Both the position numbers and the translations under genes were made by a program. The notes below the pieces were generated by a model, which saw only the letters and a program-made list of their open reading frames with translations, did not search any database and was not told the DNA's origin. Shown piece by piece: positions 16,601 to 54,707 of a stretch of 64,000 bases of DNA (position 1 is the first letter of the stretch; each line of letters begins with the position of its first letter). Source of the DNA: Blepharisma stoltei ATCC 30299 (Eukaryota; Protista; Ciliophora); the NCBI GenBank assembly GCA_965603825.1, contig CBFDEM010000058.1, positions 372,001-436,000 of the forward strand, given 5' to 3'.

Positions 16601-17142
16601 TTATTTTTCATGGGTTATTTCTTCATGCCTCACAAGTATATGAGCCTTCAATGTATACTTCTCTTTAAACATCTTCTCCCAGTAAGGGCATCTTTCTGTC
16701 CTTTCCTCAGTATGCTTAAGCATATGCTTCTTCAAATCTGACGGTGAGTAGTTTTTTTGCCACACAGAGTGCAAGAATATCTGAGCATTGCGAGTTTCTC
16801 TTGGTCATTGTGAATTTTTTGATGTTTGTTCAGCTCATACTTCCTCCTGAACGCCATATGACACTCGTCACACGAGTAAGGCCGTTCTCCATTATGCCCC
16901 ATCAGGTGGGTCTTCAACCGATCTTTCTGATAAAATCCTTTATCGCATTGTTCGCAACAAAATGGGAATGTCCCGGAATGTCGGAATTGATGCTCTACTA
17001 ATTTTGCTTTCTGAGAAAACTCCTTGTTGCAGACTTCGCATTGCCATTGCTTGTGCATAGCATGAGTTTGTTGATGCAGTGACAAGGCTGAGCTGCTAGA
17101 TAGGAGTTTCTCACAGATATTACAAGTAAACTTCGCTTCCAT
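16601..17142 (-). CDS. C2H2 zinc-finger protein with a frameshift in finger 5
   Basis: Four intact CxxC...HxxxH fingers with GERPY-type linkers. After an A7 run near 16752-16758 the finger pattern continues in another frame (YSPSDLKKHMLKHTEERTERCPY...) to TAA at 16601. Confidence 0.82.
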
Positions 17143-17499
17143 TGATTTTAAATTGTTCCAGTAACATCTATAGGTATGATTTCATCAAGTTTTCTGGTAT
17201 TTTAGGAATTTCCTCGCTTGAAGATTGTTCAAGATATTATTTTTATTTCGGATCTTAATAGGATACACTGATGATTAAGAGAGAAAATCAAGAAAAGAAT
17301 AGTTGATTTTGGTAGATCTTAGCGAGATCTATAATTGGACATTTTGCAGTTTGGCGTGCTAGCTGCAAAGTGGGAAATTATTTATAAATAATTTTTCATT
17401 TTTCATTTTGAAAGGACGCAAAGATATCTTTTCGTTAAAAGCCAGGATATTTTAGATTGGAACTTGCTACTTGAGCAGGATGCTCACTTATACTTGTAC

Positions 17500-17555
17500 T
17501 ATAGCGCTTTCCCGAGGATGGCGCCATTCCGCGCCATCCTCGGGAAAGCGCTATA
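17500..17555. repeat. Perfect 25-bp inverted repeat with 6-nt loop (palindrome family, copy 1)
   Basis: TATAGCGCTTTCCCGAGGATGGCGC-CATTCC-GCGCCATCCTCGGGAAAGCGCTATA. Confidence 0.97.
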
Positions 17556-18087: not shown

Positions 18088-20241
18088 TTACTCTATTAAG
18101 GTATCAAGAAAAGAGATAAATCTTTGAGCATAAAAGTTAGGAGGTGCACAAGATATTGCCGCTTTACCATGCACAGTAGTCTTAATCGCATGCTCGATCT
18201 TCTTCTTACTTCCATAATACGTGAGAATATCTATTATCCCCATAAAGTATATATATTTACCATCGCTGCTAACCATTCCACCTTCATCTCTTTCTGCAAA
18301 TCTTACAAACTCATCCGAAGCTGCTTTTTGATGAATTCCTCTTTCTTTAACCTCATGAATTCCTAGCAATAAGCTATAATCTATGATTTTAAGGCTTTGC
18401 AATAGCTCACAGTCTCTTTCTATCTGCTGCATCAGCAATTTCTTCCTTTCTCCTCCAAGGATAATTTTCTTGCCCTCTTGAACAAAGTCCAGGTCTTTTC
18501 TCGCAACTGATGAGCTTTCCCCTTTATTTGTGAATCTTCCATAGGTTGAGCCTTTCAAATCATAGACCTCAGTAAGTTCATGTCCTGACTGAAAAACATT
18601 TCCGAGAACAGTGAAATACAGCATTTTCCCTTTGCTAGCTATCAGCTTGTGAAAACCAAAAAATCTTGCTACCAAAGTATGCGGATTTTCCATAACATGC
18701 AGATAGTAATCCGGCAGAATTTTTTTTAAAAATAAGTATTCTTCTCTTTTCAGAGTTTTTAAAATGTACTTCCCATCATCACTGAAATAGAAGAAGCTCC
18801 CACTTTTACCAGAGGAGCACTGTCCTTCCAGAGATGAAAACTCGTTAACCATCAAACTATTCATAATTTTTTCTACCCCAAGAGACTTCACGTAGTCATA
18901 GGCACTAATTCCAAAAAATCGTCTTATTCTTTCAAAAATACTAGGAGCGTAGTCTCGTAATTTGTAAGTTTTTTGTTTAACTCCTTGATTGTTAGCAGGA
19001 AGTAAGTTGTATTTCGCTTTTTCCAAGAATTCTTGCTGAGTGGCATCAACAGTTGCATCGATATTCGCAGCTATTGATTTTACAGCTTTTTGGATTCCAA
19101 GCATCATGTTAAGGATTAAATTTCAGTCTTCGTCACCTCAGTGAATTACTGTTTCTCTTCTTTTTGATGGAGCTTGCCTAATAGCTGGCTCATGAACGCT
19201 ATTTCTATTAGCCTCATCTGGGCTATTTTGCTTGTAATCATTTATCTTTGCCAAAATATGTATGAGTTTTTCTTTAACCTCTCCAATCTTATTTTGATTG
19301 TTATGAGAGTTATTATTTTCTAAAGCTGACTCGGTAAGCTTTATTTTTGGTCATTTATTGCTTTTTGAAGCATTAATTGGTGTTGCCTCAGAGGAGCTAT
19401 CAATAACATCGTCTTCTTTTTCAAAAATTTCTGTCTTCGCCGCGTTGAATCAGTCATTTGCTGACTCTTTTCTAAAGCTTAGTTTTATACTACTATGACT
19501 TATAGCTCTAAATCTCTTAATAGGTGTCTTTGCCTCGCCTCCATCAATTATTTCTAGACACTCTCTAATCTCATTTTCCAGATCTTCAAGAGTTTCTTTA
19601 TACCCGACCACTTCAGGCTTTTTTTGCTCGATGTTTGGAGGGTTAATTTTGTCAGTGATTTTTTTATTGACAAAATCAAATCACTCAAATAGGTTTTCGT
19701 TGTTGGACATTGAAGAAGTGTACTCTTCTAAGTCAATCATATCGTCATGCTTAGTATCGAGCTGATCGAAATAATAACGAATATCTTCTTGGGTAGCACT
19801 TACTTCACTTCCGGTTAGGGTATTGTACATTTTTCATACATTGATAAGCCATGAAGCAAAATCGTTGTAAGTAATATTCCCTTCTTTTGAATTTTTAATT
19901 AGTTTAAAGCTCTGTTGAGCTTTTTCTTGGGGAGTTCCGTGCATTAGAATGTCCATGTAACTGAGGTATTCTTCAATCACAACTTTACCGGATCTTGATT
20001 TATTCATAACATCGAATATCCTGTCTGCAATCAGGCGAGTTGATTTCATACCTAATAAACCCATATTTTCACGAAAATCATCGAGGGTGAAACCATTTCC
20101 TCTTGCCATGCGATCGAATCTTTGTTTATAAGTTACTAATTCAGGCTTAGTGAATCGATACTTCTGATAGAGCACTTTTAAATCTAAATCTTTGCGTAAT
20201 AAAGTTTTTTTCTTTGACCCACATCCTCCACATATGAGCAT
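18088..20241 (-). CDS. EF-hand (NCS/calcineurin-B-like) + phosphatidylinositol-phosphate kinase (PIP5K) fusion, paralog 1
   Basis: EF-hand N-terminal ORF is co-frame with the PIPK domain (DYAP, GKSGSFFYFSDD, YDLKGS, IDYSLLLG, GIIDIL); joined through TGA codons (H*GDED*NLILNMMLGIQ). Confidence 0.9.
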
Positions 20242-20693
20242 TGAAGAGTTTTAAATATAAAATGGGCAAATAATTCTAAGGAAAAACTATATTAAAAAGC
20301 TTATCACAAATATAAAAATCAGAGTCAAAAAAATATATTTTAATATTTTCTCTAATTTATAGCAAGTTTAGAACGACCTTATAAAAGTTAAATTTTTATA
20401 AGTTTTCTTTTCAAGATCTCTTTCTCTAATTATGATATTTTTCTATTTTAATTTAAAAACTTTCCTTGTGTATTGTTTTATTATAAGCATATTTTTTATA
20501 CACTTATTTACTCCTCATAAAAATCTATTCTTCTGAATGCAATTGATTTAAATAATTTTTTCAATTTCAGCTTCTAAGAATTATTTTCAACTTGATGCCT
20601 TAGCAGGATATTCCTATTCCCTTTTATTTTAAATATACGATTTATATTATTTGTATGTATTGATAATTGTTAAATGAATACAGTTAAATCAAA

Positions 20694-33051: not shown

Positions 33052-33169
33052 AAACATTTTATTTTTGCATGCTCACTATGCTAAATATAATTCCTAGACT
33101 TTCATATGAATTGAAATTATGCTAATTATTGAAGTATTTTAGCTCACTATTTATAAACAGTTACTCAAT

Positions 33170-34453
33170 ATGACACTTAGGAAACCAAAAATCGATGAAT
33201 GAGGAGTTATTTTAGAAAAGCAGCTGGAACTCAATAAAATTCATGAAATTGATGAAAAAGCAAGACAAGCCCATGAAAAGGAATTTCTGCGAAGAGAGCT
33301 GGATTATCAACAATCCCTTAAGGAAGCTCAAAAAAGACAAAAATTGAACTTGATTGCTAAGGACTATGAAGATGTCCAAGAAAGAACAAATTGGTTTAGG
33401 AGGCAGGATTTAATTAAACGAGAACAAGAACGCATGCAAAAAAGCGAAATCGCTGAAAATTTATTAAACCATCATTCCTTTATTAAGCAACGTGAAGCAG
33501 AAGAACGTAAGCAAAAGTATCTCGAAGAATTAGAGCAGGCTAAAATAGCCAGGCAGAATATTGAAATTGATGAACAAAGAAAAATTGCCCAAAAAATCCA
33601 ACTAAATAGGGAGCAGCAAATGATTCGGCAGCTACAAGAGGAGCAAGCCAAGGAAAGGAAACAAATTGATATGAATGAGAAGCAGCGTGAGATGGAGCTA
33701 ATAATGCAGAGAAAAGAAAGAGACGATAAAAGAGAAAGAGAATACAAGCAGCACTATCAACATATATATGAAGATCAACTCAATAAAGCAATACGATTTT
33801 CCTCAGTCATTGCAAAAGAAATGCAAAAAGACAGTCAAATTGATAATTGAATTGAGAAAGGCGTTGAAAACTATCAGCAAAAATTAGCTGAAAAAGAAGC
33901 CTATGAAAGAGAAGTAAAAGAAAGAAACGCAAAAGCAGTGAAAGATATGCTGAGAAATCAAATTGAACAAAAGGAGTCGCAAAAACGAAAAGAGATGGAA
34001 GAATACAGAAAAGAGCAGGAAGAACTCAACAAAAGAGTCGAATTCAGCAGAATGCTGGAAGAAGAAAGAGAGCGCCAAAAGTTCATGCAGAAGCAGGATT
34101 ATGTAGATCAATTGCTTAGACAGACTAAGGCTGAAGAAGATTCAAAAGCCTACACTTTCAAGCTTTCAGACCATGAAAAGCTGTTAAATAAAAATTTGCT
34201 TGATGAAGCAATTCTTAGCAGGAGGTTCAAAAGAGGAGCTGATGAAATTGTGAAAGGGCGATCTCCTTCGCAGTCATTAGAAGAAACCAATCCCAGAAAA
34301 ATCCTTGCATATGAGTACAATGCGCCTATAATTGGTGAAACTCAGAGCTTAAGACACAGAGGAAACAATTATAAAAGGATAAACCCAATTACTGGGATTG
34401 AATATGGATATGAACTCCCTAAATCCTCGTTAAACAACTCATTACTGTGGTAA
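33170..34453 (+). CDS. Coiled-coil E/Q/K/R-rich protein
   Basis: ATG 33170 is co-frame with ORFs 33344 and 33938 via TGA (IDE*GVIL, IDN*IEK); C-terminal NPITG motif. Confidence 0.8.
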
Positions 34454-49833: not shown

Positions 49834-51992
49834 TAAGAAATTATGATTATTTAATTTTTTTTGTGTGAATCCTTATAGATAGCAACAAAATTTTTTCAAT
49901 AGTCATTAGGTGTTAAAGCAAAAATTATAATAAAATATTTTAAATTTTTCCAATATTAAAAAGGCCTGAGTTAAAAATATCTTTTTAGGCTTTAAAAAAG
50001 CCCTTATGGGCCAGTTCAGCCTAATTAATTATAATGAATTTGATGTTTAAATTTTTTAGATTTCAATTTTAGGCTTATCTATTTGAAAATTATTGAGCTT
50101 CTTTCAAAAACTAATACAATTAGGAAATTAAAGAATGTCTATAGTAATTTAATGGTTGGTAAAATAATCCGCAGAAATAATAGCTAATGGTTTAATTATA
50201 GCAAATCTAACAATGGTTAGCTTAATTAAGTTTGAATAGCTTGATAACTATTTGAAGCTATAAAGCAATTTTGAAAAATTGTATTCAATATTAACCTAAA
50301 TTAATAAATTTAAGTAATTGTAAGTTCATTTTGATTGCTTATGCTTAAATGTAAAAGCTTTGCTAAAAAAAACTAAATATTTCAGGGAAAATAAGTTTAA
50401 TCCTGAAATATAAACTAGCCTTTAAGAACACCTAAACATGGTGAAAAATTATAATAGCAAAAAATCTTTTCGATTAAATCAAAAATTGAAAAAATTAAGT
50501 TAGAAGTGAAAAGAATAATGAAATAGATGAAACTTATGCAAAACTAGTTATATTTTTATAAATTTATAAAGCGATTTATTAGTTAAATAGAAGAATAAAA
50601 TAAGGTTCTGGAATTTAAAGAGGTCTCTTCTTATATAAATGACTAATAAAGCACTTCATAAGAAAATATTTTTCAATTATCTGAGACTTTATTAATTAAT
50701 TTGGATGACGTTGCTAAAAAATTTTATTAACAAAAGCCTTTACTGGTTTAAATAAGCTTAAATTTAGAAATTTGTAAACCATTTTTATTGGTGGCTAGAT
50801 AAGAGATACCTTAACTTGCTCTAAGTCCTTCCAAAGGGTTCTAAATTAGCATAATCTTTTACCAATATAAATGTATATTAAAATTATGACTAATCTTCTT
50901 ATATAGTTCTTTAAAAAATTTAAAAATTATTTTTGCTAGCAATAAACAGTGAAGGCCTAGCTTTATCTCTATATTCGTTTCAACCTATAATATCCTAATT
51001 TTTTATCTCTTTCATGTCTTTCGACACGATTGAGTATCTGCATTACATATGAATTCCAAGATGTAACGATATTAACTGTAAAATTATGATCCAATGAATT
51101 AAGTTCTCAAGAGGAAATAAAATTAAATATTGAGTCATTATCTTAAATTATTGATTGCATCATCAATTTTATTCTTTAGCACTGTTTTACGAGTTTCAAT
51201 CCACTTGGTGGCATCACAGCAATTCTTCTCCTCTTGGATTTTCTAAGTCTAGTGATTGGTCGGCAAGGCATAAACTTCCATAGATCATTCAGATTTGGCA
51301 CTGTCATAGCATTCACTCGAGATGTTAGCATAATTCGAACCATTAATTTATATTAATTAATGTCCTCAAATTTTCAATTTTAGAAATTTCTCTAATGGCG
51401 AACTAAAATTGAAATCTATCAAAGAATTCGTTCAAGCACTGCAGTAAAGAATGAATTAATAAGTAAGAATGATCTATATAATTAGAATATAGCTATCAGA
51501 AATTGCTGCATTTTAGAGCTGGCAAGCTTAGTCCCAGACATATTTTCCATTTTATAATTGCTTAATAGAGGATACTGGTCAGAATTTACTTTAAATTGAA
51601 ATAGACTTATTGAAAAGTTTTTTTGATTTAAAATAATTTATGAGATTATAGAATTGATATTATAGCGCAAATGGTTTTATTTGACATTATAATTATCAGC
51701 TTATTATATAAGGCATTTATGCTAAAAAATTTTGCCTTTTTGCATTTATAGAGAAATGGCCACTTGGGTAGCTATCTTTTGTAAATAATTGGCTAAAATA
51801 TTTTATTATTCTTTAAGATATCTGCCCCTGAAGTCAATGCAGCATTTTCCTTTGCATTGCCATCAGCATAATTTGATAAAATGGTCAGAGATATCTAGAA
51901 AAATTTTCATCTAAAGAGCAAAGTTTTTGAAATTCATCATAGTCAATTAATTTATTGCTTCTATAAGTTGAGTGAATTAATGTAGCAAATAA

Positions 51993-52049
51993 ATATAGAA
52001 ATTGCCCGAGGATGGCGCTATTTTGCGCCATCCTCGGCAATTTCTATAT
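51993..52049. repeat. 25-bp inverted repeat with 6-nt loop and one unpaired C (palindrome family, copy 2)
   Basis: ATATAGAAATTGCCCGAGGATGGCGC-TATTTT-GCGCCATCCTCGGCAATTTCTATAT. Confidence 0.96.
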
Positions 52050-52423
52050 CTAATTTTAGTTGGATGCTAATAATAGACTTTTTTCATAATAAAATATTTA
52101 GTTTATTTTATTTAAAGCAATGATATTTTATGGAAGGTTTATATTCAAGTGTTTGGATTACTTTTGGATTTGAAGACTAATCCATAATATTGCATAGAAT
52201 ATAATATCTTTCAAACAAATTATAACCAAAATACAAAAAAATTTACTTGAATTATGATTTGATTCTGCTTTAATTAATTTTTTATATAAAAATTTTACTT
52301 TTTTAGTTCTTTCTAAAATTTAAGCAAATACGTTTTTAATGCAAATCTTCAAATTTGTTGAATTTCAATTATAGGAAGATGCTATTATAAAGAGTCGAGA
52401 GTTTTATTTTAATTAATTTGTCC

Positions 52424-54707
52424 ATGATTCATATAAAAATGTTAAAATCTTCGTTGCTTATCACTATATGAGCGTTGGGAATGCTATTCTTAGTTTATTT
52501 ATTATTTTTTGAAATAGGCTCATATTCAGCAAGCATAACAGGATCTGTAAAGTTTATATAGAAAGAACTAAAGTTATTAGACGAATATAATCTTATTGAC
52601 CAGTGATATGAAGATGATTCAAATAGAGAATATTTTACTTTTTTGTCTAAAAGAAGCAGTCAAAGCTCAGCAAACCGAACTATAAATGAACTGTATAGGG
52701 ATTCATATATGGAAATTTACAAAGTTCAAGAAGATCAAAAATGTATTCCGGAATCTTTTGGATATACGGATGAAGATTCATTATTAAACTTTCCACGGAT
52801 GAATTTTCCAAAATGTGCAGATAAATTGAATGCACACAAAACGGTAATAGAAATTGATGTTGAAAAGGATCAGCTGATAATGAATTGCCCTGATGGGGAT
52901 GGATGATATTACTTAGGATGCAACCAAGATGATGAGCTTATAGGAGAAGATAATTATCATGGGAAAAAACAAAAATACCCTGGCCATCCAGTTAAGCTCA
53001 AAAACAATGAAGAGTGGGCATATGGAACTTGTGGAGAAAATTTTCCATTACAAGGAGCTACTTATATAAATAGACCCAAAGAAAGTTCCAAGGAAAGGGC
53101 AAAAAATATAATGAAGACCATTCAAGCACAAATGCTTAACACGAAAAGCGAAAGCCAAACTCGTCCTTTAACTGTGCTTATTTTGACCTTTGATTCCATA
53201 TCCAGAATGAGTTTCTATCGGAACCTTCCAAAAACCCAAAAATTCCTAAGTTCTCTTTCTCCTGAAAAATTTAGGGTGTTTGACTTTAAGATTCACAATG
53301 TGATGGGAGATGGGTCTATTCCTAATGTTTTTCCTCTGATTTCAGGCAGAGCCCTTGAATCTGTTTCAAAATTTGATGCTGAAAAAAATAAAAAAAACAA
53401 GACTGATTTGCTGGGCTCAGCATCAATTTGAAATTATTTAAAATCAAAAGGATGAGTAACTTTGTTTGGTACAGAATTTTGTAAAGATTATTTTGCTAAG
53501 AAATTAGGAAGAAAGCCTGATGTCGATCATTTGATGACTGGTTTTTGGTGCGCAGCCACTGACTTGCTAAATTATGAGTAAACTGCTATATAGTGATTCT
53601 GACACAGATCAGAGATGCATAGGCAATCAAAATTCTCATGTCTATTCACTAAACTACACATATCAATTTATTCAAAATTATCAAGGAATTAATAAATGAG
53701 CTCATATAATGAGTGTGCCTGCTCATGAGAAATCAGGAACTGTTGTACAAACTCTTGACGATGATTTATTAGTTTTTATGAAAAAATTTCTAGAAACAAA
53801 GGATGAATTACTAATATTTTTAATGGCAGACCATGGAATGCGCTATGGTAGCTGATATAAAATTATTGATGGGTATTTAGAACACAAATTGCCTATGCTA
53901 TTTCTAATTGGATCTACTTCAATATTGCAAGACATTCCAGATGCAATCGAAAACCTATCACACAATGCAGATCGCCTTGTGACAAAAACAGATCTCCATC
54001 GAACATTAAAACATCTTGCTAATATTCCATATTTTCGTAGCTTCAACAGATTTTCTCGATATGAGTATAAGTCTTGAACTGCTGAAGGCGATGCTATAAG
54101 CTTGCTTATCGATAAAGTCCAATTGTCTAGAGAATGCTCAAAGGCTGCTATACCAAAAATTTGATGCTCATGCCCAAAACTTCAAGCATTAGAGAGAAAA
54201 GTCTTCGATGGGAGACAAACTGATGACAAATTTATTCTTGAAATTCGAAAAATAATAGAAAATATTGCGGAAATGATGATTTATGAAATAAATCAAGAGA
54301 CTTATGGATCTTTTTACTCAGAAGGATGGCGGATATGCCAAAAAATTACCATGAAAAAAATTGATTATGCGGAATGGTCGAGATATGATTATGGAATCCA
54401 TTTGTATAAGGTAAGAGTAAGTATAAATGAAGATGAAAAAGTGAAATATGAAGGTTTGGCAATGGTTTCAGAAAGAGATATAATTGAGAGAAGTCGAAAG
54501 ACAGTTTTCCCTTTATCTTCTGTTATTAATGATGGGAAAAAAAATCTGAAAATTTTATATTTGAATAGAAAAGGCCCTCAGTCTGATTGATGCAAAAAAT
54601 TGTCTTTCGGAAAAAAAATGTTTGGGTCTCTTTGCTTATGCAATGAATATCAAGAAATAGAGAAATATAATCCAATAGCAATAGAAAAAATATTAAATGA
54701 ATCATAA
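52424..54707 (+). CDS. DUF229-like alkaline-phosphatase/sulfatase-superfamily membrane protein (introns 52547-52561 and 53578-53593)
   Basis: N-terminal TM anchor; VLILTFDSISRMSFYRNLPKT, FLMADHGMRYG, EHKLP and DLHRTLKHL. Frames reconcile with TGA=W plus a 15-nt and a 16-nt intron. Confidence 0.85.
52547..52561 (+). other. 15-nt spliceosomal intron
   Basis: GTAAAGTTTATATAG; in-frame TAG removed. Confidence 0.85.
53578..53593 (+). other. 16-nt spliceosomal intron
   Basis: GTAAACTGCTATATAG; accounts exactly for the frame change between flanking ORFs. Confidence 0.88.

Follow-up and report, generated by a model that had tools for sequence, protein, structure and literature searches.

The locus raises the question of what kind of element forms a GC-rich palindrome in a gene-free gap of the Blepharisma stoltei ATCC 30299 genome, and whether it belongs to the host or to a transposon. 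The window, i.e., the whole stretch of 64,000 nucleotides that was analyzed, contains two such palindromes, designated here as copy 1 and copy 2. A first-pass annotation had listed a TA-bounded mini-MITE among several candidates and had preferred, as its headline, an undescribed cis-acting DNA element of the host.

The two palindromes of the window

The arms of copy 1 (positions 17500–17555) are 25 nt long and perfectly complementary, and they enclose a 6-nt loop, CATTCC. As single-stranded DNA, copy 1 folds with −33.2 kcal/mol, against a mean of −8.9 kcal/mol for shuffled sequences (z = −12). The palindrome map and the ORF map bear out these arms, this loop and the gene-free gap as they had been annotated. 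With UGA read as Trp, copy 1 is intergenic, located between the 3' end of the ORF 18088–20250 (minus strand) and the 5' end of the ORF 16615–17274 (minus strand).

The second palindrome, annotated at 51993–52049, was confirmed as a copy, with limits one base less on each side (51994–52048). Its loop is TATTTT, and its right arm has 24 nt with one G missing. It is also intergenic under the same genetic code, in the ORF gap 51283–52562. The 13-nt core with its 6-nt spacer is present twice in the window, 100 dinucleotide shuffles gave no occurrence, and a palindrome scan revealed no GC-rich palindromes in the window besides these two. The GC content is 50% in the elements versus about 31% across the 3-kb loci. 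The flanks of the two copies are AT-rich and show no kinship, as had been claimed. The dinucleotide TC shared downstream from both copies is a coincidence, and other bases follow other copies of the genome.

The features of the two copies are listed below; none of them is assigned to a strand.

17500–17555: copy 1 of subfamily A, with the TA target-site copies at both ends
17500–17501: left TA, inferred target-site duplication
17502–17524: left terminal inverted repeat, 23 nt, composed of the TAG end, variable CGC, conserved TTTCC, variable CGAG and invariant GATGGCGC
17525–17530: loop or spacer CATTCC, 6 nt, the sole asymmetric part of copy 1
17531–17553: right terminal inverted repeat, the perfect complement of the left one
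17554–17555: right TA, inferred target-site duplication
51994–52048: copy 2, subfamily B, with the left arm at 51994–52018, the loop TATTTT at 52019–52024 and the right arm at 52025–52048 with a 1-nt deletion

No empty site was found for the locus of copy 1 itself. Its two TA dinucleotides are interpreted as a target-site duplication by analogy with the empty sites of two other copies described below, L009 (an identical copy of subfamily A) and L014 (subfamily C). Copy 1 shows 56/56 bp identity to 8 other genomic copies. It is a recent, probably neutral intergenic insertion and an ordinary member of its family.

A dispersed family inserting at TA

The somatic (MAC) assembly of B. stoltei ATCC 30299 was reported to comprise 64 telomere-to-telomere contigs totalling 41 Mb, with telomeres of CCCTAACA, UGA encoding Trp, and introns of 15–16 nt (PMC9942806). 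The window and the genome searched here (G000) are treated as this assembly; the genome has 41,464,486 bp in 64 contigs, and CCCTAACA repeats are found at contig ends of C11 and C58. Two contig starts have another appearance: C22 (L079, G000 C22:1–80) begins with a (TATAAAGT)n tandem repeat, not with the CCCTAACA telomere, and C14 (L077, C14:1–80) begins with a degenerate C-rich tract.

The first-pass annotation had proposed a genome search with a covariance model, and had considered that only these two copies might exist. The search revealed a dispersed family far beyond two copies. The core pattern of the annotation has 31 exact sites genome-wide. With up to one mismatch per arm, 44 paired sites were found versus 0 for the reversed control, and the central core GATGGCGC-N3-9-GCGCCATC is matched exactly at 45 sites versus 0 for the control. 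A covariance model built from 43 copies recovered those copies and 10 more with diverged arms. The census counts at least 53 copies of full length, to which a truncated copy (L032) and a solo half (L064) are added, and it is a lower bound, the covariance model having scored 150 of 12,111 candidates. The copies are distributed on 36 contigs in both orientations, with unrelated flanks. The single-arm matches L043–L050 and L063 were rejected as chance matches within unrelated sequence. The solo half L064 (G000 C50:501840–501855) is a right half of subfamily B, consisting of 16 nt of arm end with TATA, and abuts unrelated AT-rich DNA; it is either a truncated copy or a deletion product.

All copies share one plan: an outer TA, then TA(G/C)-arm-GATGGCGC, a loop of 5–6 nt, GCGCCATC-arm'-(C/G)TA, and the second outer TA. 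The element itself is non-coding and 52 bp long (51 bp with a 5-nt loop), with two 23-nt arms (25 nt with the TA) around the spacer of 5–6 nt. Forms with a 6-nt loop add 54 bp, i.e., 18 codons, while forms with a 5-nt loop add 53 bp. Numbered from the first T of the outer TA, the arm positions are as follows.

Positions 1–4: TATA
Position 5: G or C
Positions 6–8: variable
Positions 9–13: TT(T/G)CC, rarely CTTCC or CTTCA
Positions 14–17: variable (CGAG, CGAT, TGGT, TATA, GGTA)
Positions 18–25: invariant GATGGCGC

The copies can be divided into seven subfamilies.

Subfamily A: 9 copies, 100% identical over 56 bp, containing copy 1
Subfamily B: 17 copies, containing copy 2
Subfamily C: 15 copies
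Subfamily D: 3 copies
Subfamily E: 3 copies, identical
Subfamily F: 4 copies
Subfamily G: 2 copies

An ATT/ATC loop core is common across the subfamilies, and this favors a single palindromic ancestor over repeated births of palindromes. Besides the identical copies of subfamilies A and E, there are copies with private single-arm mutations, a 1-nt deletion, a truncation or a solo half. Identical copies beside decayed ones are the pattern expected of bursts followed by decay.

Two independent empty sites, one each for subfamilies A and C, demonstrate duplication of TA. L009 (subfamily A, C22:103368–103423) lies in frame within an ORF of more than 979 codons of the AAA-ATPase_like family. Four paralogues align without the element and read ...AAAAAT-TA-TGTTT..., where L009 has TA, 52 bp and TA; three of them, with full-length matches, show 61–73% amino-acid identity. 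L009 is thus an exact 54-bp insertion adding 18 codons with the TA duplicated. A TATA duplication was rejected for L009, since it would require TATA in the empty site, which has TAT. A 3-bp TAT duplication was also rejected, since the element would become asymmetric. L014 (subfamily C, C36:113863–113918) interrupts a TPR gene, and its paralogue L075 (C36:118480–118700) is continuous, reading ...ATATTT-TA-ATATTT..., so that L014 is likewise an exact 54-bp insertion with a TA on each side. For L071 of subfamily G, the paralogues are too diverged around the insertion site to align an empty site.

A library-adapter artefact had been named as a way in which the annotation could fail. An artefact of library preparation or assembly, such as a hairpin adapter remnant, can practically be dismissed: the hairpin shape and nothing more speaks for it, whereas the seven sequence subfamilies with private mutations, the exact TA-duplication junctions within otherwise colinear paralogues and the in-frame read-through within long ORFs all speak against it.

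The family is short and non-coding, has terminal inverted repeats, duplicates TA relative to empty sites and is dispersed, as is characteristic of MITEs. We therefore regard it as very probably a non-autonomous cut-and-paste DNA transposon, a 52-bp palindromic mini-MITE that inserts at TA and duplicates it. Of the candidates first listed, the TA-bounded mini-MITE is the one that the TA duplications, the empty paralogous sites and the dispersed copies support. To our knowledge, 52 bp places it among the shortest eukaryotic MITEs.

TA duplication occurs in mariner-type elements and is a hallmark of the Tc1/mariner superfamily. The closest analogy in architecture is MADE1 (MiHsmar1), derived from the human mariner Hsmar1: a palindrome of 80 bp in which two 37-bp inverted repeats from Hsmar1 enclose 6 bp, and which forms a hairpin on either strand (PMC1784062). 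Both families consist of an inverted repeat, about 6 bp and an inverted repeat, giving a near-perfect palindrome and a stable hairpin. They differ in size and number: MADE1 has 80 bp, 37-nt arms and thousands of copies, whereas the Blepharisma family has 52 bp, 23-nt arms and about 54 copies. Unlike MADE1, the Blepharisma family has no parent found in the MAC genome, is split into seven arm-covarying subfamilies and resides in a host with separate germline and somatic genomes. Every paired occurrence of these termini or this core in the MAC assembly has its arms within 9 nt of each other, and neither a longer relative nor an autonomous partner was found.

Two DNA transposon groups were described from the germline of B. 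stoltei. BogoMITE is about 389 bp long and numbers about 8,000 copies, which are restricted to the germline and excised efficiently. Its 30-bp inverted repeat is C-rich (CTCCCC...) and its duplication is TAA/TTA, as in its parent Bogo (PMC9942856). In BstTc1 the inverted repeat is 38 bp long and the duplication is TATA; both BstTc1 and Bogo are germline-limited (PMC9942856). The palindrome family resembles BogoMITE, or the elements termed 'MITIES', in that it is a non-autonomous inverted-repeat element of B. stoltei, probably derived from Tc1/mariner, with identical copies indicating recent proliferation. Membership in BogoMITE was rejected, as the arms, the duplication and the size all differ and the 52-bp family is found in the somatic assembly. 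Derivation from Bogo or BstTc1 was rejected as well, the arms resembling neither of the inverted repeats given in PMC9942856. The words of the element are absent from the text and the supplement of PMC9942856, and PMC9942806 and PMC13685798 make no mention of such an element. A search for protein homologues yielded three B. stoltei paralogues with annotation, and alleles of other strains were not among the results. Two scans of JGI metagenomes with architecture patterns gave no match, in data where ciliate DNA is scarce and near-identical records may be left out. The family, which is recently active, is undescribed in the published work searched, and the suspicion that it had already been catalogued is not substantiated in that literature; MITEs of the Tc1/mariner kind (Stowaway or MADE1-like) are already known.

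Gene context, distribution and somatic fate

The first-pass annotation had suggested examining the copies for an intergenic bias and for regular spacing, and the former is evident. With the element removed in silico, ORFs of at least 200 codons hold 8 of the 53 sites (15%); for random TA sites, the share is 40% within those loci and 55% across the window. Four of the eight genic copies (L002, L009, L028 and L030) are read through in the frame TAT-AGC..., adding 18 codons. The other four (L014, L018, L020 and L025) interrupt ORFs by an in-frame TAG, and the exact deletion of 54 bp restores ORFs of 303–323 codons. The eight insertions thus use two of the three frames (4, 0, 4), and the flanking ORFs are intact on both sides. 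Among these genic copies, no depletion of stop-frame (TAG) insertions was observed (4 of 8), which leaves room for removal before translation.

Pfam domains recognized in the ORFs around the genic copies are AAA-ATPase_like (L009), TPR (L014) and a weak Ank match (L018), and nothing else could be named. Paralogues of AAA-ATPase_like (PF09820) are arranged in tandem at G000 C22:63000–69956 and 99276–103805 and at C62:11336–12295 and 33132–34070. Two members of this cluster are probable pseudogenes, with several TAA/TAG stops in frame. L010, a second copy of the palindrome family, lies 2.3 kb from L009.

The density is about 1 copy per 770 kb, and the spacing is irregular, contrary to the regularity that had been looked for. 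Across the family the flanks are AT-rich, and directly outside the TA, A is favored (55%). A modest bias towards contig ends is seen, with 33 of 54 copies less than 150 kb from an end versus 23.7 expected (KS p = 0.014). Contigs C27 and C35 are both given as 780,130 bp, either a coincidence or a slip in the table, which touches the end-distance statistic of one copy only. Clustering is also modest, with 6 copy pairs less than 35 kb apart versus 2.4 expected (p = 0.037). The clustered copies are the following.

G000 C4: 59911, 84206 and 109088
C22: 103380 and 105705
C56: 61883 and 75574
C35: 724610 and 747632
The window: 17500 and 51994

The members of a clustered pair differ in subfamily, which points to regions tolerant of insertion more than to local hopping.

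These distributions bear on the host cis-acting element with which the first-pass annotation had headed its list, i.e., a replication origin or copy-number element, a site bound as a cruciform or by a dimer, or a signal for breakage or telomere addition, under selection at each locus. The contig-end bias would suit such a site, as would the invariant central 8-bp block, the invariant ends and the strong conservation of pairing. This explanation is nevertheless highly improbable. The evidence against it, which is indirect, consists of target-site duplications and empty paralogous sites, and it is further contradicted by both orientations at unrelated loci, by identical young copies at unrelated loci, by decayed, truncated and half copies, by copies within coding sequences, some of them gene-breaking, and by the irregular spacing.

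A role as a hairpin RNA or small-RNA precursor, in which transcribed copies are processed and the pairing is selected in the RNA as for the MADE1-derived mir-548, is very unlikely. The hairpin is very stable on either strand, and some copies are inside transcribed genes. The similarity to miRNA precursors in Rfam is sub-threshold; the best match in Rfam 15 has 28.9 bits versus a gathering score of 100 and represents generic miRNA-hairpin similarity. The copies are without common promoter or terminator context, and the insertion signatures account for the origin of the family, so that an RNA role would be at most a by-product.

The mini-MITE reading overlaps with another, in which the palindromes are inefficiently excised IESs ('MITIES'); the two differ in somatic fate only. 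A PiggyMac-type excisase would clear the TA-bounded germline insertions from some somatic molecules and leave them in others; the reference assembly would represent the latter, and the host genes would still be expressed from the former. This is a live rival, if an unlikely one. TAYAG is the end consensus of Paramecium TA-bound IESs and of Tc1/mariner, and the TA boundary followed by TAG or TACAG in the Blepharisma family resembles it. The Paramecium consensus is given as TAYNR in PMC9942856. Paramecium IESs are unique sequences removed from the soma, whereas the Blepharisma family is repeated and somatically retained. In B. stoltei, 376 palindromic IESs were reported, and TATAgnnnTTT is given as the end of those IESs that measure about 153 and 174 bp (PMC9942856). 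This end, found in the TA-bound IES families rnd-1_family-87, -82 and -160, equals the end of subfamily A (TATAGCGCTTT); some of those IESs are palindromic and were proposed to be MITEs. They are 153–228 bp long and excised from the MAC; the likeness is one of end motif, and homology is to be taken as a lead.

The TA boundaries and TATAG...TTT ends like those of the 153/174-bp IES classes thus favor partial excision. So do the four TAG-interrupted ORFs that an exact deletion restores, with TAG-frame insertions undepleted, and the TPR-coding flanks on both sides of L014 beside its continuous paralogue. Compared with an IES, the family has the TA-containing terminal direct repeat and the inverted ends, but every copy is present in the consensus MAC assembly, and the length is 53–54 bp versus at least 65 bp. 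The interrupted genes are members of large paralogous families, and they could be nothing more than broken copies. The coding depletion described above contrasts with the true B. stoltei IESs, about 70% of which are intragenic, being excised (PMC9942856). IES lengths in B. stoltei show a first peak at 65 bp with a 10–11 bp period, and cryptic excision shows a peak at 72 bp (PMC9942856), so the 54-bp unit is under every reported IES or cryptic-IES length peak. It is about one helical period below the 65-bp peak, which would fit a size limit on excision.

Arm symmetry and the proposed history of the family

The complementary exchange of N6 and N6' noted between the two copies of the window is real and spans seven subfamilies. 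In an alignment of the 31 distinct sequences, 94.6% of cells are paired, and both-sided changes are observed at 12 of the 25 arm pairs, in 73 cells versus 18 in shuffles. The covariation score is 0.29 versus 0.09 in shuffled alignments (0 of 500 shuffles reach 0.29) and 0.04–0.07 in slid registers; such figures are prone to inflation among related sequences, and the qualitative point stands. Subfamilies differ from one another at about half of the arm positions, yet the two arms match within each. The private mutations of single copies are mostly one-armed (L031, L033, L034 and L037–L041), which fits decay after insertion. The inference that pairing and a conserved core are maintained holds across the subfamilies, and the arm-to-arm correction that had been offered to explain it is plausible.

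In subfamily C, arm positions 5–6 are hypervariable and often unequal between the arms, with the left and right combinations GG and CC, GG and CT, GG and GC, GT and AG, and GA and AT. These variants are found in L003, L010, L011, L013, L016, L018, L020 and L029, and the inner 19 bp is invariant. The staggered cuts of Tc1/mariner transposition and the subsequent gap repair act about where positions 5–6 sit.

When the loops are set to one orientation, they are flipped relative to the same asymmetric arm pair in three of the five informative lineages, listed below with the element at about 1489–1544 or 1501–1555 of each locus.

L011 versus L013 and L014
L008 and L017 versus L034
L069 versus L071

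Template switching within a hairpin is known to invert loops and to turn quasi-palindromes into perfect ones, as in chloroplast hairpin inversions and template-switch mutations. The loop flip-flop suggests intrastrand pairing in vivo with such template switching. Plain cut-and-paste transposition by itself leaves the strict arm symmetry at unconstrained positions and the loop flip-flop unexplained, and the identity of the arms at freely drifting positions indicates that selection on transposase binding alone is insufficient.

Structure-dependent transposition through a single strand could in principle produce such arms. The hairpin would serve as an HUH substrate, as in REP/RAYT, IS200/IS605 and Helitrons, and the arms would be free to covary. 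Covariation at 12 of the 25 positions of the arm with pairing maintained at 95%, together with the flipped loops, agrees with this possibility, and the bacterial REP/RAYT and IS200/IS605 hairpins resemble the family in being dispersed, short and GC-rich palindromes whose stems covary and whose short motifs are conserved. Those hairpins belong to prokaryotes and are moved by HUH chemistry on single strands that duplicates no target, whereas the Blepharisma family duplicates TA, with a 2-bp duplication at both tested sites. We know of no HUH element that makes a target duplication. Helitrons have asymmetric 5'-TC...CTRR-3' ends with a subterminal hairpin and no target duplication, unlike the symmetric ends seen here, and no HUH gene is linked to the family. 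An HUH mechanism accordingly has very little probability.

For the mini-MITE, the following history can be proposed. A DDE transposase of the Tc1/mariner superfamily may mobilize the element in trans, in the germline. Its putative contacts would be the invariant blocks, namely the TA ends, TT(T/G)CC at positions 9–13 and GATGGCGC at positions 18–25, and the TA-proximal bases would form a putative cleavage context. The covarying arm blocks at positions 5–8 and 14–17 would be unconstrained. Transposase domains of Tc1/mariner type, DDE_1 and DDE_3, were reported from both the somatic and the germline-limited genomes (PMC9942856). Intrastrand (hairpin) templating during replication or gap repair could keep the arms symmetric, and the same process would invert the loop. 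Somatic retention might follow from size: the smallest IES class has 65 bp, and the TA-to-TA unit, with 54 bp, falls short of it by about one helical turn. The complete scenario is tentative and is offered as possible, if doubtful: an ultra-short MITE escapes genome editing by its size, 54 bp against a minimum of 65 bp for the PiggyMac-type excisase, persists in the soma or is partly removed from it, lengthens genes there by 18 codons or disrupts them, and has its arms kept identical by a hairpin-templated correction that flips the loop.

Blepharisma is an outgroup model for the evolution of ciliate genome editing from transposons. In the published picture, its DNA-transposon derivatives, BogoMITE and BstTc1, are germline-limited and cleanly excised, and the soma was reported with retroelements only. 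A somatic family derived from a DNA transposon, with a 54-bp unit just below the smallest IES class, lends itself to testing the geometric lower limit proposed for the excisase, and also the idea of 'genome defence' versus 'accommodation'. The 54 loci merit masking or annotation, and the eight in ORFs affect gene models. The seven arm-covarying subfamilies with their loop flip-flops provide a clean data set on the concerted evolution of palindrome arms.
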